From: Marsupella aquatica | Taxonomy: Eukaryota; Plantae; Marchantiophyta | Assembly: GCA_973895155.1 (NCBI GenBank) | Contig: OZ316899.1 | Location: 1,759,573-1,823,572, forward strand | Reading direction: 5' to 3' | Length of the DNA: 64,000 nt | Shown: positions 1,550-24,787 of the stretch, piece after piece | Numbering within the stretch: position 1 is the stretch's first letter | Layout: every line of letters starts with the position of its first letter | Position numbers and translations under genes: made by a program | The notes under the pieces: model-generated | What the model saw: the letters and a program-made list of their open reading frames with translations, nothing else | Databases searched by the model: none | What the model was told of the DNA's origin: nothing

Positions 1550-2205
1550 TTATTCCACGGAACGGTGTCCCGCCTGCTCTTGAACGATGTCGCACACCCC
1601 ACAGCACAGTCTTCCGCCCGCTGTGAAACCACGTCACACACCGAATGGCATACTCTTGGTGTCTCGCTGATCGATGGGGTCAAAAAACCCCACGAAACGG
1701 TGTTCCGCCTGCTCTCAAACCTCTTTGAGAGAATATATAGGACGGATGTTGTTCCGCCCTGGATGAACCTTCATCCAACATCAGGCTGAACGTTGTTCCG
1801 CTTGCTCTGAAATTCAATCCAGCCAAGGAAAGAAAATGTTCACCCCACGCAGGTCCTCAGTTGAACACCTGGCGGGACGGTGTTCCGCCAACTCTGAAAT
1901 TCAGTTCCGCCCAGTAAAGAAAAATCTTCGGCTCAAGGTGAATCTAAGTGGTCCACCCACTCAAATGCACTTCCGCCTCCTCTGAAATTCAGTGCGGGCC
2001 AGGAATCAATAGGGTTCCTCCCAAGCTAAATCTATCTGGAATACCCCACGGAATGCTGTTCCGCCTGCTGGAACAAAATATCCAAAATAGAGTCCGCAAT
2101 AGCATAGCTCTCGAGGGAACAGTGTTCCGCCCGAACCAAGCCAATCACCAAGCTGAAGTTGTCTTCAGCTTGAGTGCAGGTACCCTGCAGAACAGTGTTC
2201 CGTCG
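1550..2205. repeat. Dispersed array of GGAAC-N3-GTTCCG-like palindromic motifs upstream of the F-box-like gene
   Basis: About 10 full or half copies (e.g. acggaacggtgtcccg ~1557, aacggtgttccg ~1695, gacggtgttccg ~1876, ggaacagtgttccg ~2117) separated by non-identical spacers. Confidence 0.75.
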
Positions 2206-2256
2206 GATAGAAAGTGTAAGATATTAGTATGTTGGACAAGGCGACAAAAACTCTGA

Positions 2257-3122
2257 CTCTCAAGGAAATCTCATGCAATTGCAGACACGGTGGAAAAAGG
2301 CGTTCAGTGTTTCAATAAGTTTTGCGCAACATTTGATAGACATATCACACTCCAGCGTTCTCGTACGCAAGAATACGATCTCTTGGGAAAAAGTCTACTC
2401 CCAGGGCTTCCCAACGAACTCGTGGAGTAGTTAATCTGGAATATATGTCTAGGATCATTTAACACCTTGGCAGATCAAAGTTCATTCTTGGATTCAGAAT
2501 TGAATTCATTTATTTTGATGAGGTCTGTCTCTTGCAGGTGGCGCCACTTGATAAATAATACGTACATCATGGGCGTCCTCAAGATGACTATTTTAGACTT
2601 TCAACCCAAGGAAGCCAAGTTTCCAATTGATTTCATTCTTGCACCTCTTCTCGAACAAACTACCTATAGCTTCTTTCGAAAGTATCCAAAAATTAAATTC
2701 TTGGGATTGATGCCCAAGAACCTTCGAGAAAAATTCACAAAGGCGTATGACTTACTGCATCCCATTGAAAAATGGGATTTTACTCTACTCTGTTACGAAA
2801 CCAGATATCTCAAGAATGGCTTCAAATCTAGATAGAATTTGCTCCTAATAAGTTCCGTTTGATCAATCCGACAGGATGGACGAAGTCTCTAGCAGAGCCT
2901 TGCAGGTCGAGAAGGTTTGCAATCTACTCAAAGATCTTGAGAAAGTGGCAAATTTTGAAAGACGAAGGCTCAATCCCGATTCCCTATACATGGAAGGTCT
3001 GCCAGACAATTTGGTCATTGACAAAATTTGGCCTCTTTTGATGGATCACAGTCTTCAATGCGGAGGACTTGATCAAGAATCATTTGTCTCGAGGACAACT
3101 GCCATGATCAGACTTGCGTCAT
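2257..3122 (+). pseudogene. Tandem two-F-box-like protein, 5' part (split by solo LTR A)
   Basis: SLLPGLPNELVE*LIW...LMRSVSCRWRHLI (TAG 2428-2430) and a second motif EGLPDNLVIDKIWPLL...IRLAS running into the LTR; frame break near 2835-2875. Confidence 0.55.
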
Positions 3123-3612
3123 TGTGACGCGGATGACATGGTCCTTATTCTATAATCTGAGTAAGTAGGTTGCTGTATGCAAGGAGTAGCTATTGATATT
3201 GCATAACAATTAGCAAGCTGGCAAGAATAAGGGCAATCATGGCATTAGAGTAGGGATAAAGGTATTTCAGCTTGAAGACTGCACAACCAAGGCAGACACA
3301 GTTGAGGTAGTCACTGTCAAGGCCACAAAGGAGAAACTGGGGAAGAGAGGATTCAGCTCTTCAAGCATACCATCTTCTTGACAAGCAAGATGGAGCATGG
3401 AGGCTCTTCAAGACGCCGGTACGGAGGTAGGCATGGTAATTCAAGGAAGCAAGTCTCCATAGCTGAATATGAAGTTGTGGGGTATGGTGACTGTGCTCAG
3501 GATGAAATCTAAATGTCTTGGGTGTGTAGCTTCATTTTGTTAGTTAGGTTAGTGGTTCATAGTCTAGTCTTAGAATGTTAGGGAAATAAAAGGCTATGTC
3601 GCGGGTGGTCGG

Positions 3613-5499
3613 TGTAGTTTGCTATGAAGAACCAAAAACACACTTAAAGGTCTTCAAACTCGGTATTCGTTCCCGTAAAGAACAAGATGGGGTTGGTTTG
3701 ATAGATTTAAACAATAATAAAGAACCAAAAATGTTTTCCACACATAGTAATCAAGTTTGATTACTTTAATAAGGTATTTTGAAGATCGCTCCACAGCGGT
3801 GAGTAGTTTTTAATGGTAACTCAGCATTGGGTAACCATAAATTAATGAAAAGGAAATGATTAACCAAACACAAGAGAAAATAATCTCAAAGTACGCTAAG
3901 GGAGTCTGGAATAGACCAAGGTTACTCCTTAGACATAAGTCAAAATGAAAAGACTTAAGGATTCAAATCCATATTGCTTTTCAGATCTAAACTGCTTACT
4001 AGAATACCTTTTAAAATGCCATCAACATGTCTTATCCTTTCTTTCTAAGTGGTACTCAGATAAGATCTAAAAGGTAGCTACTTCAACATTTAGATGGTAC
4101 TAAGTATCATGAAAGAAAATCCATCAAATTCATTAAGACATAAACTCAATGAGTTAACTTTAAGAACTTAGGAATTTGTAATGAGTCACCAAGGAGGAAT
4201 CTGTCATCACAAGATCCAAAGATTTCTTACAAATGCAATTTTACTTCATGTGTTTATGATAAGTGTGTAGAAACACAAGAAGGAGGTAAGTCTCTCCTGT
4301 TATTAAGCCTGATTTAGAACTCATAGGTTCAGAATCAATACTTAACAAGAGGGAGAGGCAAAAATGCACAACTTAACCATAATCTACACTAGTGGTAGAG
4401 TTATCTTATAGTCAAAATCTACCGAATGAGAGGTCACAGGGTCAAAGAGACATGCCTCTTCATACCCTTCAAAAAGTTAAAATGACGATTCAGTAAGTGA
4501 AAAGCCGGAAAAATGGGTTAGTATGAACTCGTAAACTAGTAAGCTAGTAAACTCGTAAGAAGTTTACTTAGCGAAACTCGTAATCGTAAACTAGTAACTC
4601 TTAAACTAGTAAACTTGTAATGCGGTATTCTTAAAGACTTGATGAATTCAACTATTTTTAACTTCCTAACTATAAGTAAAAAAACTCAAAGGTTTTGCCA
4701 GCAGGCTTTCCTAGGTATAGACTATATACTGAAGAAGTATGACAGCTTCCAAAGCTCTAGTATGCATTTATAAAAATCAGATAAGATGCACTACTCTTAA
4801 AACTAACTAAATCACTTAAGACTACTCCTCAAGCTTGTTGTCGGATGTCTTATGGTTCGAGTAGCTCCACTGCTGTGATAGTTCAATTATGTGTAACTTC
4901 CATTAGTTCAGCCTGGCGTGGGGATCTTCGAGAATAGGGTAGGCATCTCAGTTGCCTTTCAGGATACATCAGGGGCATTCTCTTCCTTAGATAACATATG
5001 TCTATTTGAAGAGCTTCTCTATACATCCCAATCACGTCATAATTATTGCAAGTAGCAGCATATACTTGGGGATAATGGTATAGGAATTCATCAGAGTTCA
5101 GCATCCTGGAATAGAAAGGGTGAAGTCTCCATCTGACATCTCTGAAGTACCGGTTGAAGCTGGCCAGAGTTTGAGAGGTAAGGTGGAAGAGAAGTCAGTA
5201 ATGAGCGCCTATGTCTTGCATTCCTTCCCTTTCAAGGTGAGCTCTTCATCCGTTGTGGAGTCCCGTTGAACTAGTCGTAAGATGTCACGATCACAGGGTC
5301 GCCAACTCTTAAGGCGTAACTCGTAAACTCATAAAGCAGTGAACTAGTAAACTCGTAAACTGAGTTTACTCGTAACTTAGGAACTTAGTAACTTTGAATG
5401 CTGTTTCAGTTACAGTTAGCAATAATTGCAGTCTAAACACCGTAAAAAATTTAAATTTTTTTAGTTTCTTCATGCTTTTGGAATTACCCACTACTTACA
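3613..5499. mobile_element. Nested TG...CA insertion, probable solo LTR of a different family
   Basis: TGTAG...TTACA ends; TSD GTCGG at 3608-3612 and 5500-5504; empty site with a single GTCGG in the sister LTR B near 14360-14380. Confidence 0.85.
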
Positions 5500-5664
5500 G
5501 TCGGCGACCATATCTCATTCAATACGTCACCAAATCCGGATCTGTAAAGAGCATTGGAAAGATCTGGTCAAGGTGAGTAAAATAGATATAAAACACTTGG
5601 GAAACAGAGGTGTATTAAGGAAGATATGGCCTGATTAGTGTGACGGGTTAACTTGTGGCCAGAA

Positions 5665-6045
5665 TTAGCGGGTTCGGCTTCGGTTTCGGGTTAACCTAAG
5701 CTCGGCCACGGCTTAGCTTATGTGAGCACGACTTCAGCTTAGCTCATGTAAGCACGGCTTCAGCTTAGCTCAGGTCAGCATGGCTTCAGCCTAGCTCAGG
5801 TCAGCACAGTTTCAGCTTAGGCTTAACCCGGGTTCGGATTAGGTTGATCCCGGGTTAGACTGAACTCGGGTTAGCCTAAACTCGGGCTTGGGTTAGCATA
5901 GGTAAGTTCGGGTTCGGGCTCAGCTTACCCTAGGTTAGTGGATAGCGGGTAGCGGCCTAACCCGAGACCACGGGTTAGCTCTACTCGGGTTAGATAGGAT
6001 AGCTAGGTTAGCCAAACTCGGGTTACCTATGTAACTCGGGTTAGC
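5665..6045. repeat. Minisatellite-like block in LTR A (cttcagcttagctca and ctcgggttag units)
   Basis: Direct inspection of reiterated units. Confidence 0.75.
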
Positions 6046-7791
6046 ATAGCAGTGAGTACCCCCTCTCGGTTACGGGGACATAACTTTCTGTGTATTTGAC
6101 CAAATCGGCTATAATTGACCTCGTTGAAAAGAGGAGCTCAAGCCGCTTCCAATGTATCCACGCAGCAAATGGTTGAATAGAGAAATTGGGAGAGGAGGCG
6201 CAAGCTCGCAAAAACCATGGAGGAGGGCCAAATCCGAAGAACATAGCCAATTCGAGATAGAAATAAAGTTGCGAATTAGGGTTCAGTAGTTAGAGATAGT
6301 GGCGACTCTGTTAGGGCTGGGATGGGGCTCCAACAACGTAGTATCCACCCATTTGGGCTCAGTATGAGAGTATATAGAGCAGCCCCCGGTAGAGGCAGGG
6401 GGGACTTCAGTTGTGTGATCTCACGTAGACTGAGCAGCAGGGAGGAGCTCTGTTCAAGGAAGGCTGGGCTTGGAAGCTGTGTGTTGGGGAGAGCTTGGTT
6501 GTGCTATTACTTAGGGAGTAATCAGCCACGCTTCACAGCAATAGTTGGCCAGGTTTGCAAGCTGGATTGTGGCTCTTTCTAGTAGGCAACACAACTGGGT
6601 TCTTTTCCCCCAATACATAGCCTTGGTGATAGGTGATGTGTTGGTGATTGTAAACTGTGGGGAGGATTTCAATGTGATTTGCGGTGAGCACATTAGGAAG
6701 GCTGAGACACTGATTGAGGGGCAGCAGGAGGAGCATTTACAGTTCAGTCTGGCAAGGCTACGTGATCCATGGGGAGTCCCGGCCTTTGTCTGGTAGAGAG
6801 CACTAAGGGATTTATGGCCAGAGTTGAGCTTGCAGGGCAAGCGTGAGGCCGGGCCTCATTGCAGTTTGGGATAGATTGTCGTTAGGCCTGGTACCAGCTT
6901 TGAAGTCAAGTCAACTGTGCATGCGTAACTTGACGTTCTGAATTGGAGGTGTGAGATCTGTACGTGCCCCCAAGAATGAAGTGCAGTGAAGGAGGTTGAG
7001 TTCAGGATTGAGTTTGCAAGGCAAGTACGGGATTGGTTTGAGTCCAATCTGCCGTTGCAATCTAGAGTGAGTCGGGCTCAGGTTCAGGATTGAGCTTGCA
7101 TGGCAAGCATGGGGCTTGCGGGGCAAGCACGTCGCAATCTGGAGGAGACAGCCTTTGGGCCTATTATTCGGATCAAGTGTTCTCAGTGAACTATTGTGCA
7201 CATCTTTGAATCTAATTGAGTTTTCCTCTCAGGCCTCATTTCTCTCATGGATGTGTGTGTGTGTGTGTGAGGCAATGTGAGTGTATGATGGAACTAGCAG
7301 TGCCACTGAGAGGTGTACCGGGTGCATTGAAGTGGGTTGGGTGAGGGCTGTCACAACTCTAATTGCTGAGAGTGGAATGGCAGAGTGGTGGGGCAATGGC
7401 TTAGAAGTCCCTAAGCCGGGAATCAGTCAGGAGTCACTGGTTTATGGGTACATTCTGGTGGCGGAATAGAAATATACCTGTGACAGTAAGCATACGTATA
7501 GACATATGCGCACCATAGCGCTAGGCCCTGTGTGTACGGGCCCGATATGAAGACCCCTTCTCACCAGAACTATCATGAGCACATGATCTGATTCCCAACC
7601 TTGGTTCTTAGGGATTGAGCTTGGGTGATGTGTGACGGAGTCTTGCTATGATAGTCTGGTGTTAAGGGCATAAACTGGTGTTTACCGGCCTTCACAACAT
7701 CCCTTCGTGATCCTCAGGTACAAGGAGATGGTTTTGGCACCCATAGTGACGTTTTTGGTGTTAAGACCCATGTCAATCGCGTGACAGTCAT

Positions 7792-8054
7792 GCAACAAGA
7801 AGTGGCAATTTTTAGTAAAACTTACAAAATTTTGGTTTGCTCTAATAGAAGCAAACGAGAAAATAGAGAAGATCAACGACAAAATTTCTACCATTCCAGA
7901 AGCCAACCTTTTAACACCGCGCCATCTGCTACACGTCTTTAGAGACAACCTCTACGACTTTCCGAATATTGAGATACTTGGATCACTTCTTCCGGTGGAC
8001 AGTTGCATATTTTGGATGTTGTGGGAAAATTTAATGTTGAGGAGAGGGAAGTAG
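7792..8054 (+). pseudogene. Tandem two-F-box-like protein, 3' part
   Basis: Removing LTR A plus one TSD gives an open join IRLAS|CNKKWQFLVKLTKFW...RRGK* completing the second F-box-like motif. Confidence 0.6.
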
Positions 8055-8243
8055 TCTAGAATAGATTCTAGGTCCGACCAAAATGAGTACTCAAGGACTT
8101 GATGTATTCCAAAACTTTCCAATAAAATGCTCGGACAACTTTTTGGGATATTGTTCTGTTAACTCCTTCAGTTCATTAGTAGCAGACGGAACGGTGTTTT
8201 GCCAGTTGACCAACATCACTCTCCTAATTGTTTTTTTGTGCAG

Positions 8244-11200
8244 ATGGATTCCACCATGACTTCGTCGTCAAAAAGAAAGGCTGAGTCCAAAACACCCCAA
8301 AGGAATAAAGTTTGGAAGGTGACTCATCGTGACGTTGACATTTCGCTGGGAAGATTCAAGGGGGCAAAAATTCCAAAGGTTTTTTGTGACGAGTCAAAAT
8401 CAGTCCATCCCTTGAAGATGGAAAAATGTCAAAGATGGGGGGTGGTTTGGTACGGAGGATGCCTTTGTCTTTGTGTCAAGACAGAGTCACTCTCCGTAAT
8501 AGCCGACCACAAGATAGTCGGTTTGTTCTTCAAACAAAACCTTGGTCTTGTCGAGTATCAAGAGTGTCTCTACCTATTGCTGGAAGATATCGAGGAGCAA
8601 ACCAAAATTGCTGTTTGCTTGAGACTCCCAGAGTACAACAAGTTTGACCAAGCGGGGATTGACGTGGAGTTGGAAAAGACAGAGAAGTACAAAGATTTCA
8701 CTTCCCACCGCCTACTCAATGAAGACATCCGTTTCCCAATAGCACCAGAAGTAGTTTCCGGAGATACTCTTACCTTCTACTTCACTAGTATTTTTGAGTG
8801 GAGTAAGGAAGATTTTGTTTGAGACTTCATCGTAGGGAGAAAAGGGGAGATCCGTCCGGGAAATCTTCCAGATGAAGTTAACGACAAGAATGCAAAGGGA
8901 ATGTTCAGTAATCTTTTGAATGAATACAAATCAGTGACTTTGTTTGAAGGAAAATCCTTTGAGCTGGCAACACTTCGATGTAAATTAGGACCTGATGACT
9001 ACAAATGCCAAGTCTTTGATCGGAAATATTGTGAAGTTCTAAAGGGGTCAATGATGGGTCATTCTTCCCTCGCACTCGAGAAGACTTGAGTCTACCTCGT
9101 TCCAGTCCAGTGGGATGCAGGCAAAGCTAAGAACGATCCATTCTACAATGGAACTCCCTTCAAGTCTTGACCGACACTTGAAGATGTGAAGAATTGCTAC
9201 TTCTGGATAATTGGAGGACAACATACAATTGAGGCTTACAAATTGCTGATTGCCGATCCAAAATTTGATTCGAAAAAAAAAGAGGAACTCCTCATGGTTA
9301 CAGCCACTCTCTTCTGGACACTGTTCAATCTCGTTGGGAATACAAAGATTATGGGCCTTTCAAAGCTTTGAACAACATGAACAAGGCAACAATGCCAGAA
9401 AGTCAGTTTCTTCTGATGGCAAAGCAAGTCAGGAAAATCTGGGTGTCGGCCGGGAGACCACCATCATTGAGCGGACAAAAAGCAAATTCAATGTGGAAGG
9501 TATGTTAAGTTTTCTTTGACTTGGGGTCATTTGATAAATAATTGCAAGAGCTCAACCCGCGGAACAGTGTTCCGTGGGATCCTGAGATCTTCATTATTCT
9601 TATCTTTCTCACTTTGCTTTCTATATTTGCAGCCATTTTGTGCAGCGGCCCATATTGCGTACCCAACAGCTGTCATGGTCAATGGAAACATGAGATTCAT
9701 TGAGATGGCACCGTTTTTGTTTGAGATGAAGGATGACACGTTTGAGCTCTAGATGGAAGTTCAAAGTCTCTCAGAAGATGGTCTGCTCATCCACTCAAAT
9801 AAAGTTCTCCAGCACATAGCAAAGCCATATCAGGATAGAACAACGTGGCATCTCCGGAGAAGGTTTTTCCGGCATATGCAAGGTCTTGAAGATCGAGATC
9901 TGAAAAAGCTGGCAAAGTATTTGATTTCAAGAGAGAAGGTGTCGCTCTTCCCGAATAGGATGAATGACAAGAATTACGACCCTGTTCAAATGGAAGGGTG
10001 GAGGTCACTTGAGGAGTTTTGCCTCGAGAAAATGAATAAGCGTATTTTTGAATGCATATTTTTGTTGGAGTTCACTGAGAGAAGAAAAATCAACGAATTC
10101 CGCATTTTGAGTAAAGATGAAAGGAAGGAGAAGGTTGCTGATGTTCGCAGCTTTTTCCATATTGATGGGCAGCGGATGCATATGCTAAGGGAGTTGCTAC
10201 CTGCTGGCCTATATCAATCTGGAAGGCTCCACAACATGAATTGGGCAGAACTGATCGATCTTATTCCGACTTCTTTCAAAGGTTTGGTCGACTCAATTTC
10301 AAGATCTGTCGACCGGAACGGAAATTTGCTTGTGGTGAAAAAAAATGATCTGTTTCATTTGCAATCGATTGAAGGGGTTGGAGGGAAGAACTATTTTGAT
10401 GGTTTGTCTCAAACCTATGAGAATACACCGGTGGACCTTTTCTATTTTGATTCGACGAGGACATCTGAGTATGGTCCATACGACCATCATTTCTATCGTC
10501 GGTTTTTCCAAGCAACTTCTACTATTGGAGGTGCGTGACATAAAGTTGTGCTGATAGTCAACCCTTTGGAGATTATTGACGTCATGCAAGGCATCACTCC
10601 AACAAAGAAATACATATGTCTCCCTACCCAACTCACTTTTCGGAGCTCCGAAAAAAACAAAAATGACATCTTGTTAGAAGCAGAATGCCGAAGAACACAG
10701 TATGTCTTGTATTCCTTTTTTGATGAAGCGTTTGTGGCTTTGACGCTTCCCGAAGAAAAGGAGTCATCTTTGAGAGACTCCTTGAGGGGGAAGCTTGCAA
10801 ATTATGACGAAGTCGACGTCGCAGAGAGTCTCAGCGACAAGAAAACTGCCACATATTTTTCTTATCTTGTGAAGCTATTTCTATCCTCTGGTGATTCCGT
10901 TGTTTGTTTTGGCAACAATCGTCGTCTCATCAAATGTTTAATGGTAAGTGTGATTTGTGAATTTATTTAAATTTACATGTTTCTCGCAAGTTTAAACTCA
11001 ATTCAATGACTAATGAACACAATTGATTCTCTGACATAGGGGAATTCTATATCTGTGACAAGTTTCTGCCCTGTCGAGAGCCACAACCTCTTGTCTGACT
11101 ACTTCAATGCGTTGTATCCGTCGTTCAAAGAGCCAAAATGTCCGAAGCGTGAGATATTTGAAAACCTCCTCCGGAGAAAGATTTTGAAGAAGAAGTCAAT

Positions 11201-11384
11201 TTTTGAAGTGAGGGACAATATCCTTGACATCCTCAACGAGAGCTATCAACTCACGGATTGTCAAATAGAGCATGTCATCAAGGAGTATGGGTTACAAGAG
11301 CGGCCTGATAACGATGATGATTGCCTTCTCTACTCCCTTCCTCAGATCCTTCCATCGGGACCTCTTGGCGATAAGTGTTTTTAA
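8244..11384 (+). pseudogene. ~970-aa three-exon protein: ParB/Sulfiredoxin-like domain plus degenerate beta-class N4/N6 DNA-methyltransferase-like domain
   Basis: Frame continues through TGA 8820, 9087, 9168, TAG 9750, TGA 10536 and one frameshift near 9365; phase-0 GT-AG introns 9500-9632 and 10944-11039; motifs YFWIIGGQHTIEAYKLL, PVDLFYFD, KKTATYFSYLVKLFLSSGDSVVCFG. Confidence 0.55.
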
Positions 11385-11439
11385 AGTTAAAGTTGATTTT
11401 GTGTTTCTGTGATCGTGCCATTGGAGTTGGAGATTTGCC

Positions 11440-11663
11440 GACAGAACTACGTTCCGCGGGACTACCCTAAATTTGCGGATGGAACGGTGTTCCGCCGGAT
11501 TCTTCTTAAGTCTTTGCTGACGAAACGGTGTTCCGCGCGCTTAGTCGGATTTGCCGACGGAACGCTGTTCCACGGGGTTCTTTGGATTTTTGAACAGAAA
11601 GGTGTTGCACGCGCTGAGTAGCATTGCAGACGGACCGGTCTGCCGCGTGCTTAGTGGGATTTC
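11440..11663. repeat. Degenerate ~37-bp tandem array with CGGAAC-N3-GTTCCG core, left part
   Basis: ggaacggtgttccg, gaaacggtgttccgcgcgcttagtcggattt, ggaacgctgttcca units; continues at 14531 after LTR B. Confidence 0.8.
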
Positions 11664-12935
11664 TGTCACGCGATTGACATGGGTCTTAACACCAAAAACG
11701 TCACTATGGGTGCCAAAACCATCTCCTTGTACCCGAGGATCACGAAGGGATGTTGTGAAGGCCGGTAAACACCAATTTATGCCCTTAACACCAGACTATC
11801 ATAGCAAGACTCTATCACACATCACCCAAGCTCAATCCCAAGGAACCAAGGTTGGGGATCAGATCTGCGCTCATGATAGTTCTGGTGAGAAGGGGTCTTC
11901 ATATCGGGCCCGTACACACAGGGCCTAGCGCTACGGTGCGCATAGGTCTATACATATGCTTACTATCATAGGTATGTTTCTATTCTGCCGCCGGACTATA
12001 CCCATAAACCAGTGACTCCTGACTGATTCCCGGCTTAGGGACTTCTAAGCCATTGCCCCACCACTCTGCCATTCCACTCTCAGCAATCACAGCTATGACA
12101 GTCCTCACCCAGCCCGCTTCAATGCACCCTATACACCTCTCAGTGGCGCTGCTAGTCCCATCATACACTCAGATTGCCTCACACACACACATCCATGAGA
12201 AAAATGAGGCCTGAGAGGAAAACTCAATTAGATTCAAAGATGTGCACAATAGTTCACTGAGAACACTTGATCCGAACACTAGGGCCGAAGGCTGTCTCCT
12301 CCAGATTGTGACGTGCTTGCCCCGCAAGCCCCATGCTTGCCATGCAAGCTCAATCCTAAACCTGAGCCCGGCTCACTCCAGATTGTGACGGCAGATTGGA
12401 CTCAAACCAATCCCGTACTTGCCTTGCAAACTCAATCCTAAACTCAACCTCCTTCATTGCACTTCATTCTTGGGGGCACATACAGATCTCACACCTCCAA
12501 TTCAGAACGTCAAGTTATGCATGCATAGTTGACTCGACTTCAAAGCTGGTACCAGGCCTAACGACGATCTACCCCAGACTGCAATGAGGCCCGGCCTCAT
12601 GCTTGCCTTGCAAGCTCAGCTCTGGCCATAAATCCCTTAGTGCTCTCTACCAGACAAAGGCCGGGACTCCCCATGGATCACGTAGCCTTGCCAGACCAAA
12701 CTGTAGATGCTCCTTCTGCTGCCCCTCAATCAGTATCTCAGCCTCCCTAATGTGCTCACCACAAATCAAATTGACATCCTCCCCACAGTTTACAATCACC
12801 AATACATCACCTATCACCAAGGCTCTGTATCGGGGGAAAAGAACCCAGTTGTGCTGCCCACTAGAAAGAGCCACAATCCAGCTCGCAAACCTAGCAACCC
12901 ATTGCAGCTGTGAAGCTTGGCTGATTACTCCCTGA

Positions 12936-14205: not shown

Positions 14206-14530
14206 CCGGGTTACACACTAACCCGTCACACTAATAAGATCATATCTTTCCTAATACACCCCCATTTTGAGAGTGTTTTATATCGATTTTACTCGCCTTG
14301 ACCAGATCTTTCCAATGCTCTTTACAGATCCGGATTTGGTCACATATTGAAAGAGATATGATCGCCGACCACCCGCGACATAGCTTTTATTTCCCTATTC
14401 TTAATGCCATGATTGCCCTTATTCTTGCCATCTTGCTAATTGTTATGCAATATCAATAGCTACTCCTTGCATACAGCAGCCTAGTTAATCAGATTAAAGA
14501 ATAAGGACCATGTCATCGGCGTCACAATTT

Positions 14531-14678
14531 CCCCACGGAACGGTGTTCCGTACGCTTAGTCGGATTTCCCCACAGAATGGTGTTATGCGCGCTTCATCGG
14601 ATTTCCCCACGGAACGGTGTTCTGCGCGCTTAGTCGGATTTCCCCACGGAACGGTGTTCCGCGCACTTAGTAGGACTT
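14531..14678. repeat. Four 37-bp tandem units ccccacggaacggtgttccgcgcgcttagtcggattt, right part of array
   Basis: Units start at 14531, 14568, 14605, 14642. Confidence 0.9.
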
Positions 14679-14702
14679 GCTGGTTTTGTTAATTAAAACG
14701 AT

Positions 14703-16881
14703 TTGGAACTTACCTACAAAATGATTTGGGTGATATTAGGTGTCGACCCTAAGACGCATTCAAGCAAGAGATTACCTAGTCCATTGAAGAGAATCGATTA
14801 CCACAATGAGGAATTGGAGTCGGGTGATGAGAAAGATGAGGATAAGGAGAATGAGAAATCCGAACGCAAGGAGGAGGCATATGATGATGATGGCGCTGAT
14901 GATGACAAGAACGACGATGACGACGATAATGACTCGCAAAGGGGCAAACAACGTTCCAAATCCAGATGTGATCGTGAAGGAAGCGATTTACATTCTGATG
15001 GGGATTTCGAGAGCGAATCAGCAAATGCAGATTTGGGGAATGAGGTTGGTCACCAGGTGGGGAGAGCGGAAAGTCAGTAGGAGATTCAGAGGATTCTGAA
15101 AGTCGGGAAAGAGAAGCCGAGGTGTTGAGGAAAAAGAAGGTGGAGTTAGAGAAAGAGCTTGAGCTCGCAACAAAAAAACTCAAATTTGACTTGAAGTCTG
15201 CCTCAGAATCAAAAAAGAATGTTGATGAGGGCAAAACTTCAGGGAAAAAAGAAAAAAAAAGTATACGTGTCAAAAAAGAAAAAAAAGGAAACTGAAGAGT
15301 TGGAGAGGAAGGAGCGACAGAAAAAGGAACGGCGGGAGAAAGAGGAGAAAGAAGAGCAAAAGGAGAGAGAGGAAAGGGAGAGGAAGGAAAGGGAGGAGAA
15401 AGAGAAGGAGGAGGAAGAAGAGAGAAAGGATCGAGAGGAGAAAGAGAGGGAAGAGGAAGAACGGAAGCAAAAGAAAGATGACGAAGAACAAGAGGAGGAA
15501 GAGAACAAGGGGGATGAAGACGACGAAGATGATGAGAAGGAAGAGGAAGAACGGAAGAAAAAGAAAGATGACGAAGATCAAGATGAAGGGAAACAAGAGG
15601 AGGAAGACGAGGGGAAGGAGGACGAGGGAAAGGAGGACGAGGTAAAGGAGCAACATGAAGGAGGGAGAGGAAAGAAGCCAAGAGAGAAAAGAGAGAGAAA
15701 GAGAAGAGAGGGAGAGGAAAAAAGCCCAAGAGAGAAAAGAGAGAGAAGAGAGAGAAAGAGAAGAGAGGGAGAGGAAAGAAGCCCAAGAGAGAGAAGAGAG
15801 AAGAGAGAGACAGAGAAGAGAGAGACAGAGAGGAAAGAAGCCCAAGAGAGAGAAGAGAGAGAAACAGAAGAGAGAGAAAGAGAAAAGAGGGAGAGGAAAG
15901 AAGCCCAAGAGAGAGAAGAGAGAGAAAGGGAAGAGAGGGAGAGGAAAGATTCAGAAGAGAGAAAAAGAGAAGAGAGGGAGAGGAAAGATGCAGAAGAGAG
16001 AAAAAGAGAAGAGAGGGAGAGGAAAGAAGCCGAAGAGAGACAAGAGAGAGAAAGAGAAGATAAGAAGAGGAAAGAAGCAGAAGAGCGGGAGAAGAATGAA
16101 GCCGAAGAGAAGGAGAGGAGAGCAGCTCAAGACAAACAAGAGGAGGAGAGGAAAGATGCAGAAGAAAGGGAAAGAGAAGAGATGGAGAAAGAAAAAAGGG
16201 TTGATAGTGAAGGGAAGAACATGATTGAAATTAGTGGAAAAGAAGATGGAGAGTGGTCGCCGGATGCGCTCAACAATGAAGCAGACGAGTTCATCCATTT
16301 ATCAGCTGACAATACGAGCTTGGACATGGCGACGGACATGCAATGCGCAAATACTTTAAGGGAGTTAAGACTCCCTTTTGGGGGACGATGCTTGAAGAAA
16401 CAAAAGTTATCCAATTTGGAATCTTCAAAGCAGAAGCTCAATTTTGAGGATTGTTTAATGAAAGACTTCGTTATGCCGCGGAACGCTGTTCCGCCGGACT
16501 CCTCTGCACTGGTGGACGTTGATTCAAGTTTTCATGGGACTGGAAAAGAGACACTGTCGGCATCAGATTTGAAAGCCATAAACTCAAGAACAAAGTCTGC
16601 TTCTTCACGAGTTCCAAAGGTACAATTTCTATAATTTTAGTGAAGCTTTAGGCGGTTTCAACTATTCTCGAACGAATAGGTTGCTAAATTAAACTTTGAT
16701 TTTGCAAATAATGCCTCTTACATTATCTGAAAGTAGCGAGAGGTTGATAGACAATTGCCTCAGTCTATCCTTGGATGATAGAGAGGTTTTGACCACTATC
16801 GATGACATCGACATCACTCGTAACGTTATGAAATCTCTCCGTCCACGATACTGGCTGGCTTTGGATATTATTAATGGATAC
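14703..16881 (+). pseudogene. Ulp1/C48 SUMO protease gene, 5' part: acidic/charged low-complexity N-terminus and start of catalytic domain
   Basis: ORFs 14703-15080 and 15219-16634 (frameshifts in A-runs); probable donor at 16620; then EVLTTIDDIDITRNVMKSLRPRYWLALDIINGY, resembling the ESD4/ULP1a DIT...LRP..WL.D.VIN.Y block. Confidence 0.75.
15255..16205 (+). repeat. Almost purine-only (A/G) tandem-expanded tract encoding E/K/R repeats
   Basis: Repeated gagagagaaagagaagagagggagaggaaagaag-type units. Confidence 0.85.
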
Positions 16882-17027
16882 TGTTAAACATCACAATAAC
16901 TCCAACAGTTTTACTCATTCAATCCCTTCATATACATAGTCGGTTGTCTAGGTGGTTGGTTGTATAACCGTCATGGGTTAGGGTTTTAGTCCTAACCTTA
17001 GGTAGACATGTTCTAGGGGTTGCAACA

Positions 17028-17037
17028 CTCCCCCTTG
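17028..17037 (-). promoter_or_regulatory. Polypurine tract of the copia element
   Basis: CAAGGGGGAG (minus strand) abutting the 3' LTR. Confidence 0.85.
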
Positions 17038-17641
17038 GATACATCTTTGTTATAGAGAAGATGTAGACATTTAAAGTCTACCTTGGCTATCTATTGGGGA
17101 ATTGAGTTGTCTTCTAGTTTATTGTATGGTAGGGGTATAGTATGATAAAAAGAAGGTGGGGTGTAACCTCATTAAAACCTCCCCTCCTTTCTTGTGGGAG
17201 GAAAGAGTGTTACCACCCGTCCCTTTGTTGAGTCAGGTTTGTCTAAGTAAAAGTGTAAATGTATAAAATTGTCTTAACCTAAATGTTATTGGAAATTGTT
17301 TGGTAGTGTAAGGTGGTAAGTAGTTTGTAGGGTTGTCGTTGCAGTCGATTAGGTTGGTGCTGTGTTGTAGTGGTTTTGGTTGTCACGGAGGTGCTGCATC
17401 GATCGTCTTCGTGCATGGTATTGCTGTCTGCTTCTGCGGAGTTGAAGTAATCACCATATCAGTGATTCATGAAGTCTGTGTTGGTCTTCTGGTGAGTTCA
17501 TCGGTGGTGCGGTGAGCTGGATTGTTGATTGGTGATGCTGGTCGATTTGAGTGTAGTGCCGCAGTTGGGTCTTCGGGGAGCAGTGTCGTCTGTCTGGGAG
17601 CTGGAGGTAAGTGCGCGCTCCCCCTGAGTCTTGGAAGGTCT

Positions 17642-20600
17642 TTATGTGGTTTGCTTCTCCTGTGACAGTTCCAAAAGGCTATACATTCCAAGTAATCGGA
17701 TTAGTGCCTTATGTAGTACTGGAGGTAGAGATTTTGTGAAGAGGTCTGCAGCGTTCTTCGAACTCGGGATCCATTGGACGTTAATTGTGTCGCCATGTTG
17801 TTCCTGTGTAAAGAAATTTTTTGGGGAAATGTGTTTTGTCTTGTCACCTTTGATGAATCCTGCAGAAATTTGTTCTATGCATGGTCTGTTATCTTCGTAG
17901 ATGACAGTAGGGGAGTTGAGTTTAGGTTTACCTGTGGTTTCTGTAATTGATTACATTCTGTAACCAGATGCACTCGCGGCTCGCCTCATAGAGTGCAATT
18001 ATTTCTGAGTGATTTGAAGAAGTGGTGGTAAGTGTTTGTTTTGTGCTTCGCCACGAGATAGCTGTAGGTCCGATTAGAAAGACGTATCCGGTCTGAGATT
18101 TGGCGTCCGTAGTGTCGGATAAGTACCCAGCGTCAGCATAGCCCGTTAGCGTGATGTCTGCTTCATTGTAGTAGAATAATCCAAGATCAATGGTGCCATT
18201 GAGGTAACGGAATATACGTTTAATCCCGTTCCAGTGTCGGATCGTGGGTTGTGAGCTATACCTGGCTAGCAGGTTGACTGCGAAAGCGATGTCAGGTCGG
18301 GTCTGTGAAGATAAGAATAGGAGTGCGCCAATAGCCGATAAGTATGGCTTCTCGGAGCCAAGCAGTGGCTCCTCTTCATTTCTTTTCCGGAAAATGTCTT
18401 TATCTCTGTCGAGAGAACGTATGTCCATTGGTGACTTGACTGCCTTTTTGTTATGCATATTGAATTTCTTTAGCATTCTACGTGTATATGTAGATTGGTG
18501 GAGTAGTACTCCGTGTGGTAGGTATTCGAATTGCAATCCGAGGCAGAATGTAGTTCTGCCTAAATCTCTGATCTCGAACACCTTGTTCAGTTGTTTGATT
18601 GTATCTTGCAGGACCTTGGTGTTCCAAATAAATTCAAGTCGTCCACGTATATTGCTACTATGATGATCTCTTGTCTTTCTTGTTTGATGAATAAGCATGG
18701 TGAAAGGTCTGAAGTTTTGAAACCCATTGCCATCATCTCTGTCTTAAAATGTCTGTACCAGGTACGCCCACTCTGTTTGAGTCCATACATGGATCTGAGG
18801 ACTTGGACAGCAAGTCGGTTCCGAGCAGTAAGTGTTTTCGGATCTGTTCCCTGTGTAGCAGGGGCCTTCCAAGAGATTGCTTTGGCGGTAGTGTGTAGCA
18901 CTTTCTTGTTTGTGTGGCCAAAAGGGCCTTCATTCTTGGTGGGAGCGTTTTGTAGTCTGTGCTCCCCCTGAATATGGTAATGAACTCTGGTTAGTAATTC
19001 AGGAGGGGCTTCCATGTAAATGATGGTATCAAGATGTCCATATAGATAAGCAGTGACTATGTCAAGTTGATGCATTGTCAATTTATGATGTATTGCGAAT
19101 GCTATCAAGTATCTATATGTGATCACGTCCATGACAGGTGAGTAGGTCAGGTCGTAATCTCTGCCGGGTATCTGGGTAAATCCTTTGGCCACTAGTCGTG
19201 CCTTGTATCTGACTATTTCACCTTCTGCATTCCTCTTTTTGACGAATGTCCATTTGTATCCGGTGAGGTGAGTATCAGGAGTTACTGGCGTTATGGGTCC
19301 GAATACTTGTCGGGAAATCAGGGAGTCCAGTTCTGAATTGACTGCCTTCTGCCATTCCTGCCAATCATGTTGTTTTCTCGCTTCTGCTATGGTTAAGGGA
19401 TCAGGCGAGTCCTCCATCATTGCTGTTGATATTTGGAATGCGAATGTGTTGTCTGGTATTGTGGTGGGTCTATTATGGATTTCGCCTGTGTAGTTGTAGT
19501 TAATGGCTATTTCTTCGTTCTCTGTCGGGGTGGTCTGTTGGGCCCTCCTCTGGCGAGGATGTTTATCCGCGGCTCCAGGAGGTCTTCCTCTTTTCTTGCG
19601 CGGTTCAATGCTTGTGGCTGGCTGGTGGTCCATATTGATTCTAAATGGTGCGTTGGTAGCTGGGTTATGGGATCTGGTCACTTTAGCAACATCTGCGAAT
19701 GCATCGGGTAATTCTTCCATAACTCGAGTAAGGTGTAGTATTCGTTGTACCTCTGTATCTGTTTGGGAAGTTCTGGGGTCGTTCCAGAATTGGGAGTTGA
19801 TTTGCCAGGCTAGTAGTTTGGTGGCAGGTTCTGATGTTTTTGGTGTGGTGTTTAAGGCTGGGAATACTGTCTCATAGAAGTGGCAATCGGCAAATCTAGC
19901 TTTATATACGTCAGCAGTTGTAGGTTCTAGGTATCTAATAATGGATGTGGAGTCGAAACCTATGTAGATCCCCTTCTGCCTCTGGGGTCCCAGTTTAGTC
20001 CTCTTGGGTCCCATTATGGGAACCAGGACCTGGCAACCGAATGTTCGGAGGTGTGCCAGGTTAGGTGAGATGCCAAATGCAAGGTGGTGTGGGGAGCTCG
20101 TGTTAAAAGCAGATGGCCTGTATCTAAGGAGTGAAGCAGCATGTAGGATGGCGTGGCCCCAGGCAGATGATGGGAGACTGGTTTGCATGAGGAGTGGCCG
20201 AGCTATTGTTTGTAGATGTTTAATGAGGGATTCTGCAATCCCATTTTGGAAATGAACGTAGGCTACAGGGTATTCAACCTCAATCCCAGATGCAATGCAG
20301 AAGTCATCGAATGTCTGTGATGTGAATTCTCCCGCGTTGTCTACTCTTAATGTTTTGATGGGGTAGTCGGGAAATTGTGCTTTTAGGCGCAGGATATGGG
20401 CTAAGAGTCGGGAGAAGACTAAGTTGCGTGTTGAGAGGAGGGAGACCTGGGACCATTTTGATGAGGCATCAATGGTAGCTAAGAAGAACCTGAAGGGTCC
20501 GCTTGGGGGATCGACGGGGCCGCATACATCCGCATGTATTCGCTCGAGGAATTTGGGGATATTCTTGTCTGTTTTGGATGGGGAAGGTCTCATTGTGAGT

Positions 20601-22189
20601 TTTCCCTGTGAGCATGCTAGGCAACCTGGGGATCGGATGGATGTTGGGTGTACTGAGGTGGGTATTCCCTGCGTGTCTTTGAGGATCTTATGGAACATCT
20701 GTGTGCCTGGGTGTCCCAGGCGGCGATGCCATGTTTCGGTTATAGTCTGTGGAGGGGTCTCATTGAAAAAGGTGTGGATTCTAATGGCGTAGAATCCCAA
20801 TGGAAAAGCTATCAGGGTCTCTTTTATTTCTATGCCATTCTTGGTCTTGGCCACGATGTGTAATACTTCTTGGGATTCGTGGATGCTGGTGTGGATGTGC
20901 AGGCCGTTCTCTCGGATGTCCTTGAAACTCAAGAGGTTACGTGTGGCCTTCGGGGCGTATATTGCAGATTTAATGTGTATAACCGTGCCCTTGGGCAGGA
21001 CCAGGTTGGCTGGGCCATTGCCCTCTTCTAGCTGATGGTTGCCCATAATTGTGGTAACTCTCCGTTGGGAGGGTACGATCTGGGTAAAGTAAACTTTGGT
21101 TCTTAATATTGAGTGTGAGGTCCCGCTGTCTAGTATGCAGTAATGAGGGTCATCCAGGGCTTTAGACATTTCGGATTGGAAGGCGAGGTGAAGTTCGGGT
21201 AAGATTTCTGGAGTTTCTAGGAATGCTCCATGTGTCTCGTATTCATCATTATGTAAGTTCTTTTGGTATAGCGCGACGAGGTGTGTTGGGGCCCGGCAAG
21301 TTTTCCTGATGTGGCCTTTAGTTCCGCACCTATGGCAAATTGGGGGGTTGTCTGACTTATCTGTGTGGGCGTTCTGCCGTTGTTGATTGCCGTTGTTTCT
21401 TGGCCAGTTGTTGCGAAAGGTTCCTGATTGCGCTCTGCCCCGACCCCTTCCTCCGCGGTAATTGCTCCTTCCGCCCCGTTGGAAATTGTTGCCTCGTCCA
21501 TGGAAGTTATTCCTTCCACGATAGCTACCTCTGCCGCGATATGAGGTGCCAGAGCCTCGTCTCCATGTATTGAAGTGTGTTTCAGGATTGGTCTGTGGAG
21601 GTAGGGTCCCGGGAGGTCGCCGCTTGGTGTTCTGTAATAGCAGAATTTGATACTTCTCTGCTAGCAACATGTGGGCGATCAGTTCGAAGTATGTTGTGAA
21701 TCTCATGTTGCGGTATTGTGTGGATAGTACTAAATTGGTTGAGTGAAATGTTGACAGGGTCTTTTCGATTTGTTCCTCTTCATCGACCGGGTGGCCACAA
21801 ATCGCCAATTGTGATACAATTCGGAAAAGTTCGTTGTTGTACTCAGCGATCGTCTTGTGGTCCTGTACCCGGAGATTAATCCAGTCGTGCCTCGCTGCTG
21901 GGAGGAAGATCGTGCGCGTATGGTCGAATCTTGCATGGAGCTCGTCCCATAGAACTCGGGGGTTGTAGGCATTCATATATTGGCGTTTTAGAGAATCGGC
22001 AAGGTGGTGTCGAATCAGGATCAGGGCCTTCGCCTTCTCCTGTAGGGTGGGGCCATTGTCTGTTAGGATTGTATCTTCTAGGTTCTTTGATGTGAGATGC
22101 GCCTCGACATCCAGTGTCCATGATAAGAAATTTGATCCGTCTATACATAACGCTTGGAAATACAGCTTCTCAATCGCATTTGTTGTCAT
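17642..22189 (-). pseudogene. Copia gag-pol polyprotein with two frameshifts
   Basis: ORF 18587-22189: CHRCGTKGHIRKTC knuckle, ILDSGTSH protease, WHRRLGHP/DNAGEF integrase, YGLKQSG and YVDD RT; frameshifts near 18620 and 17940; RH ends at 17642. Confidence 0.92.
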
Positions 22190-22481
22190 TGTATTCAGTG
22201 ATGAGCGTAGATTCGGAGGGTGATTGTGCAGATCCGTCTCTGCTCAGCGATATGTTGTGATGTGTAACGTTCACCGGGTGAATCTGCCTCGAATTGTAAT
22301 TTATGGGATTGTTGTCAAGAGTGTATGTTGTTCATCTGCAATCATCTTCCTTTCGTCAAATCGTGGGTGGGTCGGGACGGAATCGGGAAAAAAAACTTTT
22401 GGTCTTCAAATTGAAAAAAAATGGAATTGGGATCGGTCTGCACTCGTACTGTAGGTCGGAAAAAAAATCTCAGGAGTACAC

Positions 22482-22495
22482 TCGTGCTGATAACG
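22482..22495 (-). promoter_or_regulatory. PBS complementary to the anticodon arm of tRNA-Ile (half-tRNA priming)
   Basis: CGTTATCAGCACGA directly after the 5' LTR; complement TCGTGCT-G-ATAACG matches the plant tRNA-Ile arm UCGUGCU-A(I)-AUAACG as recalled. Confidence 0.65.
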
Positions 22496-22646
22496 TGTTA
22501 AACATCACAATAACTCCAACAGTTTTACTCATTCAATCCCTTCATATACATAGTCGGTTGTCTAGGTGGTTGGTTGTATAACCGTCATGGGTTAGGGGTT
22601 TAGTCCTAACCTTAGGTAGACATGTTCTAGGGGTTGCAACAGATAC

Positions 22647-23159
22647 TTCATTTTACTAAAGAAAAAAGAGATATCTTCAAGATGTCATTTTTTCAACACA
22701 TGGTTTTATGGTAAACTCACCAAGAACATATATTGTTATAGTCCGTGCATATCAAGATGGTCCTCAAGACTAGGATATAGCTTGTTCGACTGTGAGAAAG
22801 CTTTTGTACCAATTCTCCACAACTCTCATTGGAGTCTTGCTGTCATTGACTTCAAGAAAAAGAGTTTAAAATATTTAGACTCCTTTCATAATGCAGATTC
22901 TAAAGTCCTAGACAATTTGTGGCGGTATATTTTAGACAAAGCAAAAGATAAAGGATTAGCTTCTTTTGATATTAATGGTTGGAGCCGATCCTTTCCAAAA
23001 GATATTCCAAAATAGGAGGATTCCTATAATTGCGGAATGTTTGTAATTATGTTTGGATATTGTGAAAGTTTAAGAAAACCATATTTGTTTCATTGGAGTA
23101 GTCGAAGTGAAAGTAGACGTGAAGTAGTTCTCCAATTAATGCGTAAAAATATTAGTTAG
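22647..23159 (+). pseudogene. Ulp1/C48 SUMO protease gene, 3' catalytic part
   Basis: In frame across the copia TSD: NGY|FILLKKKEISSRCHFFNTWFYGKL...VPILHNSHWSLAVID...IPK*EDSYNCGMFV; His/Asp/Cys present, TAG 23013-23015 where Gln is expected. Confidence 0.88.
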
Positions 23160-23288
23160 GCTATTATGGTCAGACTTCATTTTATAATACATTCCCAAGT
23201 GAAATGTTTAATGAAATTGACATCGTAAATACGGGTTGTTACATAATTATGTGAGTAATATTTTGATGGTTTGTTTTATTTGGTACAG

Positions 23289-23972
23289 GTGGTGAAATAT
23301 TTTAAAGGTACAAGATTGCTTGTACTTGATATGGATGCATTTCTTTATTATCCTTGTGAGGTATCATCGAAGAGCAACAAGTCGAGATTCATCACGGTGG
23401 ACAATGTTACAATATGTACAAGACCAATTTTCCACCAGTTTATGAAATTTTGTTTTGAGAATTTTAGTGTAGGAATATGGTCACGGATGTCAATAAAAAT
23501 ATTGACAAAATACCTGGCAGTATTACTAAGCGACAGTGAAAGGAGTACCCTCAGGTTTTCCTTTGGGAAAGAAAAATTATCGAGAATCGGTCTCAATGCG
23601 AACCAAGACTTTGTTTATTTGAAACTACTTGAAACTGTGTACCTTAAGATGCCACATGTAATTAGAGAAAATGTGACACTTTTAGATTTGCCAGATAATA
23701 CATTCTGCAACCCTTTTTGGTCATCTTTATATCCTTCTCCATATCATGGAGATGAAGATGATACATTTTTGAGAACTCAACTTATTCCTTATCTTTCTCG
23801 ATTTTACGAGTTTGACAATTTGTTTCATTATATTGAAGACTATTATCCAGATTGGTCCCTACAGTCTTTACATCTAGCTTGGGAGACAAATAAGAAGAAA
23901 TGGAAATCTTGTCCGGTATTTCAAAGGAAGGGAAACGTAGATCATGTCACAAAATTTAGAGCCCATACTTAG
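23289..23972 (+). CDS. FCP1/SCP-like (NIF) HAD-family phosphatase exon
   Basis: LLVLDMDAFL (DxD motif I), TRPIFHQFMKFCFENFSVGIWS, NP...YPSPY...DDTFL...L.PYL; candidate acceptor tacag at 23284-23288; frame open. Confidence 0.72.
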   Translation: MVKYFKGTRLLVLDMDAFLYYPCEVSSKSNKSRFITVDNVTICTRPIFHQFMKFCFENFSVGIWSRMSIKILTKYLAVLLSDSERSTLRFSFGKEKLSRIGLNANQDFVYLKLLETVYLKMPHVIRENVTLLDLPDNTFCNPFWSSLYPSPYHGDEDDTFLRTQLIPYLSRFYEFDNLFHYIEDYYPDWSLQSLHLAWETNKKKWKSCPVFQRKGNVDHVTKFRAHT

Positions 23973-24205
23973 TTACAAGTAGAAAGTAGCTTACTTTATA
24001 GAGGAGTGGATTTTAGTTCCCTCTTAGATGCACAATGTACTATTTGATTAAAATAAAGTAATATTTTGACTATTTTTGTAATTATCTCAAATCTATGTTC
24101 GTTTCAATTCTGTCTTGTTCAGTATCTGTGGTAGTAAATTGGTTATTACATTTGTTGCACCAAATTGAATGTGTGTGCACAAAGAAAGTAACATTTAAAC
24201 ATGAG

Positions 24206-24265
24206 TGTGATAAAAGAGGTTGCATTGATCATTTAAGCGACAAGTTTACTAATTGTCGGGCACAT
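24206..24265 (+). other. Isolated C-x4-C-x10-C-x2-H zinc-finger-like motif
   Basis: CDKRGCIDHLSDKFTNCRAH within ORF 24095-24286. Confidence 0.3.
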
Positions 24266-24787
24266 AAACACAAAACAACCAATTGAGGTATATTCCCTAA
24301 TTATCCCTTGGACTTCCCCGGATCCTTCCCGCACTCCCGAAGAGCTCCTGAACGGCTCCTGACCCTCCCCCGATCTTGGCCCAGACTGCTCCCAAACCCA
24401 TGCCGGCGAGGAAAACTCCCGAATAAGGTTGCCTGCTTGACGTTTCTGAGGATGTTTTTTGCACAATTTCATGCCTGGGCAAGGTCCAACCAGGATTCAA
24501 TATCTTTAATTAGCACGAATCTGACTAAATCTTATGCCCAGAAATGATATTTTGAAGCTTTTCGGGACTGCTACCAAAAGACTGAAATGAAAGTTAAGTA
24601 AATTGTTGTTTATAATTATATTAAATCAAATTAAATATAAATATAATATATAAATGCATTTGAGAATTTCTGGAAATAAAACATTACACTATTGTTTAAA
24701 TTAGTGTTACATGGACTTTGCATCCGAAATGGCTTTCTCCATCTGGTTGAACGCTCCTATGATCTTCTTGGAAAACTGTCAAACACT

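Follow-up and report, generated by a model that had tools for sequence, protein, structure and literature searches.

The window analysed here comprises 64,000 nucleotides of contig OZ316899.1 of the liverwort Marsupella aquatica. Between 1.55 and 24.3 kb it harbors a cassette of co-oriented genes and gene remnants, which encode two F-box-like proteins, a fusion of a ParB-like and a methylase-like part, an acidic linker, an Ulp1 protease and a NIF/FCP1-like phosphatase-fold protein, and which are interleaved with a palindromic motif and disrupted by three insertions. As put forward in a preliminary description of this DNA, removal of the insertions plus one copy of each target-site duplication (TSD) restored open joins: two open reading frames (ORFs) became continuous, and approximately 9.5 kb of same-strand genes remained. 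The strand and the length thus agree with that description; its count of four genes does not, as we discerned at least five coding units, which could nevertheless represent fewer, larger spliced genes.

Genes of the cassette and their lesions

The first F-box-like gene (2257-2835, plus strand) contains a TAG codon at 2428 inside its LPxELVE motif, and its C-terminal part is 40% identical to positions 5-193 of L005, a liverwort contig of 4,993 nt from Logan that represents the closest relative. The second one is divided into a 5′ part (2852-3122, plus strand), which continues at 7792, and a 3′ part (7792-8051, plus strand). Across the join 3122|7792, an ORF of 177 amino acids (aa) is open from 2852 to 8051 and reassembles LPDNLVIDKIWPLL...LASCNKKW, corresponding to the LPxxL...CxKxW F-box motif. 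The window's own broken F-box pieces yielded zero Pfam score; an intact 168-aa relative (L005:275-781) scored 23.2 bits with the Pfam F-box PF00646 (cutoff 20.5), the match comprising the second half of the motif only.

Downstream thereof lies a fusion pseudogene, composed of a ParB-like (DUF3723-like) part (8244-9505, plus strand) and a methylase-like part (9690-11381, plus strand). The former is interrupted by TGA codons at 8820, 9087 and approximately 9168 and by a 1-bp deletion near 9362 that shifts the frame, the latter by TAG at 9750 and TGA at 10536. The nonsense lesions reported earlier for the first three genes are therefore present but more numerous than stated, with at least five stops and a frameshift in this gene alone. 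Paralogous contigs read G at 9751, where the TAG of the window would be TGG (Trp), as in the intact relative P0001, and contain an extra C after 9362, so that these lesions are private to the window's copy. An intron between the two parts is indicated by the annotation of the protein P0006 from the leafy liverwort Calypogeia fissa, and the family alignment shows that 9753-10535 and 10539-10967 constitute one exon split by a TGA.

For residues 215-406 of the ParB-like ORF from C. fissa, ESM-Atlas feature similarity was highest to DUF3723 (PF12520; 0.95, with 182-186 shared features), followed by ParB_N (0.91) and DUF6551 (0.89), and the structural neighbours of these matches are DndB, GmrSD_N and ParB_N. 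In addition, a hydrophobic strand leads into a conserved motif, W-I-x-G-G-Q-H-T, which we take to resemble the DGQHR motif of DndB/DUF262. The ParB-like assignment, which rests on these language-model features and on this motif, serves as a lead.

The family of the methylase-like part is tiny: an exhaustive HMMER search returned 16 representatives among 1.8 billion proteins. They include P0001 (431 aa, 50% identical to the window ORF) and one protein of C. fissa, which is the sole named source among the relatives; the six family clusters that were looked up contained no match from Marchantia or any other named plant. PDB sequence searches yielded no useful match, whether started from the window ORFs or from profiles A2 and A4; the 261-aa ORF of the window had zero matches in a word-indexed search for homologues, and the best ESM Atlas score of the methylase-like ORF (0.42) was uninformative. 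P0010/P0018 and P0012 were dropped as relatives, as their matches are of low complexity. The AlphaFold model of P0001, with a predicted local distance difference test score (pLDDT) of 78, was more telling: Foldseek matched it to CcrM at 4.9e-5, the top 50 matches being all amino-methyltransferases (MTases), and VIA Z values amounted to 14.2 for CcrM, 13.3 for MboIIA, 12.8 for RsrI, 12.2 for the rotifer N4CMT and 11.9 for M.PvuII. The VIA matches span approximately 170-190 residues, within residues ~211-422 of P0001. The strand order, with motif IV first and motif I last, fits the beta class of amino-MTases.

The matches of the P0001 model among AlphaFold DB clusters were mostly uncharacterised or 'DNA methylase N-4/N-6' proteins of the A0A388 series, together with A9TKF0. 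Many of them are long, with matches that extend over the entire model and thus over the helical N-terminal half as well, and one carries a copia reverse transcriptase (RT) annotation. On the level of predicted structure, this hints at a wider streptophyte family linked to transposable elements; judged from the accession series, the A0A388 proteins presumably come from Chara braunii and A9TKF0 from Physcomitrium.

At the position of motif IV (beta4), every family member reads D-[SGCAT]-[ST]-x and thus lacks both prolines and the aromatic residue of the catalytic (D/N/S)PP(Y/F/W), and the motif I loop is reduced to F-G-E-G. From these two deviations we infer an inactive amino-methyltransferase fold, comparable in principle to METTL14 or MTA9. 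Alternatively, the ParB-like/methylase-like protein could be an active DNA modifier that marks the palindromes of its own unit with N6-methyladenine (6mA) or N4-methylcytosine (4mC), rather than a passive reader or scaffold. The beta-class fold is clear in the model, a PF01555-type N4-cytosine methylase is used in liverwort sperm (bioRxiv 10.1101/2021.02.12.428880), and the red-algal protein PAG2 has been proposed to act as an N6-adenine methylase (bioRxiv 10.1101/2025.02.11.637652). Considering that the degenerate motif IV is common to all members, that motif I is reduced, and that the Pfam profile PF01555 scores on none of them, we regard such an activity as very unlikely.

The methylase-like part is followed by acidic, low-complexity ORFs rich in E, K and R (14697-16631, plus strand), and linkers of like composition are present in the relatives. 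The Ulp1 gene is divided into a part before a copia element (16693-16881, plus strand) and the catalytic domain (Peptidase_C48; 22647-23156, plus strand). Over the join 16881|22647, an ORF of 185 aa is open from 16693 to 23012 and reads ...RPRYWLALDIINGYFILL..., the usual start of the Ulp1 domain, whose N-terminal motif is thereby reassembled. The interval 22647-23012 matched Pfam PF02902 at 6.1e-17 (62.6 bits; cutoff 20.7), with the catalytic His (HW), Asp and Cys (NCGMF) kept. With TAG (23013) in place of the conserved Gln codon and the copia element dividing the gene, the window's copy is inactive.

The NIF/FCP1-like ORF (23259-23972, plus strand; Pfam PF03031 at 1.2e-10, 41.7 bits, cutoff 21.8) is the only one that remains open in the cassette. 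The Pfam results bear out both the Ulp1 and the FCP1-like calls made earlier. The canonical catalytic motif of NIF/FCP1 proteins is DxDx(T/V); the DMDAF of the window retains both Asp residues and has F as the fifth residue. The tandemly duplicated NIF-like genes of C. fissa (L001:16018-16662; L003:17986-18615 and 18938-19648) matched PF03031 at 2.4e-10 to 2.9e-8, and their motifs, DVKGV, DLNKV and DVEGI, have lost the second Asp of DxDxT. Judged from the motif, this suggests that the proteins of C. fissa are pseudo-phosphatases.

Conserved order and lineage-specific palindromes

The gene order is conserved elsewhere. Three contigs of C. fissa (loci L001, L003 and L004) contain the ParB-like part, the methylase-like part and the acidic linker in the same order and on the same strand, and at L001 and L003 two NIF genes follow the linker. 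L005 comprises F-box gene 1, an intact F-box gene 2, the ParB-like and methylase-like parts and the acidic ORF, again in the order of the window. As the order thus recurs at L001, L003, L004 and L005, in other genomes, we rejected a chance juxtaposition of unrelated pseudogenes. Moreover, the family is multi-copy, both in C. fissa and in the window's own species, where 262-713 assembly contigs with 80-100% likeness fell on 7888-11631 in each of four public runs. The differences among the copies are mostly transitions. Further copies of the cassette were not found elsewhere in the window.

The second shared property is the palindrome. The motif CGGAAC-N3-GTTCCG occurs at 17 sites with up to two mismatches (1.4 expected), all of them within 1558-16493, and the earlier statement that one palindromic motif is interleaved with the cassette genes therefore holds. 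Seven sites with a period of approximately 88 bp form an array upstream of the F-box genes (1558-2202). A single site (8187-8201) lies just upstream of the start codon of the ParB-like part, and a perfect one (9560-9574) in the presumed intron of the fusion gene. A second array, with a 37-bp period, follows the methylase-like part and is split by one of the insertions into a left (11442-11663) and a right part (14532-14661), and a single site within the linker (16479-16493) precedes Ulp1. Assembly contigs over 11474-11625 contain 'goes back' joints of 33, 96 and 102 nt in this 37-bp-period array; the number of repeats thus differs between copies or between individuals.

In the relatives, the arrays occupy equivalent places, namely upstream of the ParB-like gene and just after the methylase-like part, with single sites before the downstream genes. 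The palindrome itself differs. When sites with up to one mismatch were counted, the motif of the window was present 16 times in the window, once in L005, at the position that matches 8187-8201 upstream of the ParB-like gene, and not at all in the C. fissa loci. In turn, CGAACC-N2-GGTTCG occurs at 27 sites in L001 and 8 sites in L004, and GCGAGCC-N2-GGCTCGC at 31-33 sites in L003, where it extends to a 28-bp perfect palindrome (ATAACTGCGAGCC-CG-GGCTCGCAGTTAT); the off-diagonal counts between lineages are 0-1. The arrays of L003 (2102-3169 and 8782-9755; 65-67-bp period) are 5.6 kb apart, and no recognisable gene lies between them. The preliminary description had drawn an analogy to VANDAL transposons, and the lineage-specific arrays are what this analogy would lead one to expect. 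This co-variation of protein and sites across lineages argues more strongly than any other observation for a product of the unit that reads the palindromes.

Nested insertions and the question of mobility

The three insertions that interrupt the cassette interval each possess TG..CA ends and 5-bp TSDs. Insertion A (3123-7786, minus strand; termini TGTGACG...CGTGACA; TSD GTCAT at 3118-3122 and 7787-7791) itself contains a nested TG..CA element (3613-5494; TSD GTCGG) and a further insert of approximately 325 bp (3257-3581). Its empty site is represented in the public data: in an assembly contig of run X2, GATCAGACTTGC (window 3106-3117) is immediately followed by 7787, as predicted, and a paralogue of ~84% likeness on a public assembly contig continues upstream of 7788 without insertion A. 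Insertion B (11664-14526, plus strand; TSD ATTTC at 11659-11663 and 14527-14531) landed inside the palindrome array, and a minisatellite with a 13-bp period is located within it at 13831-14196. Insertions A and B belong to one family of approximately 2.9 kb with 19-bp imperfect terminal inverted repeats (TIRs); they are 91-94% identical, lie 3.9 kb apart and, being copies of the same family in opposite orientation, generate a large inverted repeat. We considered whether the two arms of this repeat (3121-7796 and 11654-14528) are long TIRs of a single large element with 7797-11653 as its interior. This reading was rejected, as both arms are separately bounded by TG..CA ends and a 5-bp TSD, and as the family to which they belong outnumbers the cassette by a factor of hundreds. 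The word depth of this family in public assemblies of the species is 5,000-190,000, compared with ~17-70 for exact single-copy contigs, and the element is probably the solo long terminal repeat (LTR) of an abundant retrotransposon.

Insertion C is a Ty1/copia element (16882-22641, minus strand; TSD GATAC) with 146-bp LTRs that are 99% identical, mismatching at approximately 1 of 146 positions. Its gag-pol ORF of 1200 aa is open and followed by an ORF of 256 aa; apparently, it is a young insertion. The cassette is embedded in a nest of retroelements, formed by this copia element at 16.9-22.6 kb and by gypsy-type integrase, RT and LTR sequences from ~24.3 kb to the end of the window. A CT-rich low-complexity tract with 12-14-bp periodicity (556-981) lies directly left of the cassette.

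As to mobility, the C. fissa loci are informative in two respects. First, the copies lie on different contigs, and their homology stops just outside the arrays and genes. Second, the 17-mer AATTTAAAnCnGACAAA occurs in L001 in exactly two copies, which are inverted (7719-7735 and 17672-17688) and bracket the arrays and genes, thereby delimiting a unit of ~10 kb that lacks a transposase. L004 keeps the left copy (7337-7353), at the point where the homology between the two loci begins. As a candidate 17-bp TIR, this pair is suggestive but weak.

Several observations weigh against an origin of the cassette as part of a transposon that reads its own sites. Neither a transposase domain (Pfam on the window ORFs) nor inverted termini (between 1-1600 and 23950-64000) were found, and the window lacks a recognisable TIR or element-level TSD; on this point, the ORF scan and the inverted-repeat search agree with the preliminary description, which saw neither transposase nor termini. 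Likewise, the 21-kb C. fissa loci revealed none with certainty, and inverted-repeat searches of L003 returned palindrome arrays only. The candidate termini of L001 are short and AT-rich, lack a clean TSD and were obtained in a post hoc search. Homologues of the F-box and Ulp1 genes were not found in the C. fissa loci, and as far as these comparisons go, both may be lineage-specific additions or neighbours. Concerning the ParB-like part, Pfam and PDB profile searches both remained without match, so that the earlier 'ParB' label lacks support from profile hidden Markov models, and an AlphaFold model from a 7-row alignment was unusable (pLDDT 32). The ratio of non-synonymous to synonymous substitution rates (dN/dS) of this ORF between L001 and L004 is 0.64, which indicates weak constraint.

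These observations raise the question whether the unit belongs to the host. It could represent a non-mobile, fast-evolving gene family spread by segmental duplication, with the arrays as autoregulatory operators and the window as a pseudogenised member in a region rich in transposable elements. In line with such a family, transposase and termini are missing at the window locus and not clear at the C. fissa loci, L001 has an ordinary amidohydrolase gene ~3 kb downstream, and members are annotated as genes in C. fissa. Against it stand the copies on different contigs, whose homology ends just outside the arrays and genes, and the candidate inverted termini of L001. The extreme patchiness of the methylase-like family and the decay of many copies likewise argue against a host family, and the set of Ulp1, dead methylase and ParB-like part with motif arrays matches known accessory modules of transposons. 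A host gene family therefore appears unlikely to us.

Still less probable, and in our estimation a far-fetched explanation, is the relic of an integrated giant virus, resembling nucleocytoplasmic large DNA viruses (NCLDVs), or of another large viral element. The domain inventory, comprising ParB-like nucleases, N4/N6 methylases, Ulp1-like, CTD-phosphatase-like (CTD, C-terminal domain) and F-box proteins, does resemble giant-virus sets, giant-virus-like insertions occur in bryophyte genomes, and in the literature searched ParB, methyltransferase, Ulp1 and transposon were combined only in a paper on Mimiviridae. On the other hand, no capsid, polymerase, packaging ATPase or other hallmark gene was present among the ORFs of the window and the loci, and the unit is only ~9.5-10 kb in size and recurs as the same small unit. 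Furthermore, it contains at least one annotated intron and carries its lineage-specific arrays in cis.

Taken together, the unit is real, conserved and co-oriented, and it probably originates from a transposon. The preliminary description regarded it as cargo of a large mobile element; its conservation, co-orientation, copy number and own palindrome arrays fit this view, whereas a transposase and termini were not found in the window. With modest confidence, we favour the reading that the interval 1.55-24.3 kb represents a defunct member, riddled with insertions, of a multi-copy liverwort unit, and that this unit served as a 'self-recognition' accessory cassette of DNA transposons and is the land-plant counterpart of a cassette described in red algae. 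As a dead copy, the window locus is valuable as an anatomical example and as a prompt for comparison across species.

A proposed self-recognition cassette and known systems

How such a cassette might work can be outlined as follows. A dimeric DNA-binding part of the ParB-like/dead-methylase protein would bind the element's own palindromes of 14-16 bp in the non-coding arrays, and binding would concentrate the protein on copies of its own lineage. There, the F-box protein (via ubiquitin), Ulp1 (via deSUMOylation) and the NIF-like protein (via binding or dephosphorylation of the phospho-CTD) could act locally on chromatin and the transcription machinery, with the outcome that the element stays expressed or is shielded from silencing. 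Protein and sites would diverge together, giving rise to lineage-specific pairs. The more general notion, that liverwort DNA transposons carry a sequence-specific self-recognition system in which a palindrome-binding ParB-like/dead-methylase reader recruits ubiquitin-, SUMO- and CTD-phosphatase-like effectors and which forms co-evolving 'specificity groups', is tentative, and on balance we doubt it.

To our knowledge, the anti-silencing protein VANC of the VANDAL elements in Arabidopsis is the only transposon system for which recognition and de-silencing of its own copies have been demonstrated by experiment. VANDAL and Kaonashi elements, both Mutator-like elements (MULEs), carry an Ulp1 domain. 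If the proposal is true, the liverwort cassette would be a counterpart of VANC that is independent and works by a different mechanism, would be related to the PAG cassette of red algae, and would point to an ancient, widespread toolkit for transposon counter-silencing across Archaeplastida, with distant fold relatives presumably in Chara and Physcomitrium. A second, structurally unrelated system would mean that transposons of plants and algae have repeatedly, and since ancient times, relied on sequence-specific recognition of themselves. Natural, orthogonal modules for DNA targeting would moreover be available in the lineage-specific pairs of protein and palindrome. New here are the gene order at the C. 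fissa loci and L005, the palindromes specific to each lineage, and a methylase fold without DPPY.

The closest published arrangement is found in red-algal Plavaka transposons, in which PAG2 unites a PF01555 methylase and SET, PAG3 contains a ParB-like domain plus a 2-oxoglutarate (2OG) oxygenase, and tandem inverted-repeat arrays adjoin PAG3, for which the authors proposed self-binding (bioRxiv 10.1101/2025.02.11.637652). This PAG cassette occurs in Plavaka, Mutator, Zisupton and Fanzor-encoding elements and moves between transposon superfamilies (bioRxiv 10.1101/2025.02.11.637652). The liverwort unit, which we liken to it on the basis of the published description, shares a ParB-like part, in our case as a lead only, a methylase fold of the PF01555 type and nearby inverted-repeat arrays. 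It differs by having a liverwort host, by uniting both parts in a single gene with degenerate methylase motifs, and by being accompanied by F-box, Ulp1 and NIF-like genes; among the scanned ORFs, Pfam revealed neither a SET nor a 2OG domain. Of a DDE transposon around the unit, neither TIRs nor a TSD were seen in the window, and L001 has a candidate TIR pair only. The combination of domains, described earlier as not known from any element, is thus in part published for red algae, as regards the ParB-like part and the PF01555 methylase with inverted-repeat arrays; its F-box, Ulp1 and NIF partners, and an occurrence of such a cassette in land plants, were not found in the literature searched.

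The individual parts can likewise be compared. Fold and motif order (IV ... X, I) of the methylase-like part agree with those of beta-class MTases (PF01555), such as CcrM, M.RsrI, M.MboIIA, M.PvuII, the rotifer N4CMT and DN4MT1 of Marchantia, with Z of 12-14 over ~180 residues. In contrast to these enzymes, the liverwort protein lacks (D/S)PPY and any Pfam score, carries a helical N-terminal extension of ~230 residues and is fused to the ParB-like domain. DUF3723, the top feature match of the ParB-like half, is a conserved accessory gene of unknown function in the giant Starship transposons of fungi (PMC9156397), and hence likewise an accessory gene on a cargo-carrying mobile element. Unlike a Starship, the liverwort unit has neither a Pfam match to DUF3723 nor a DUF3435 tyrosine recombinase, and its host is a plant and not a fungus.

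The functional analogue would be VANC, which acts together with arrays of its target motif in VANDAL elements (PMC5735166, PMC10398659). A transposase of the VANA/MURA type or a VANC-type domain was absent from the window ORFs, the long TIRs and 9-bp TSD of such elements were likewise not seen in the window, and the liverwort motifs are palindromes of 14-16 bp, with a protein of ParB-like/methylase fold as the candidate binder. By analogy, the liverwort cassette may nevertheless be functionally comparable to VANC and its motif arrays: in both systems, a protein encoded by the element has as its partner a short motif that is tandemly repeated in non-coding stretches of the same element, and protein and motif both differ between related lineages.

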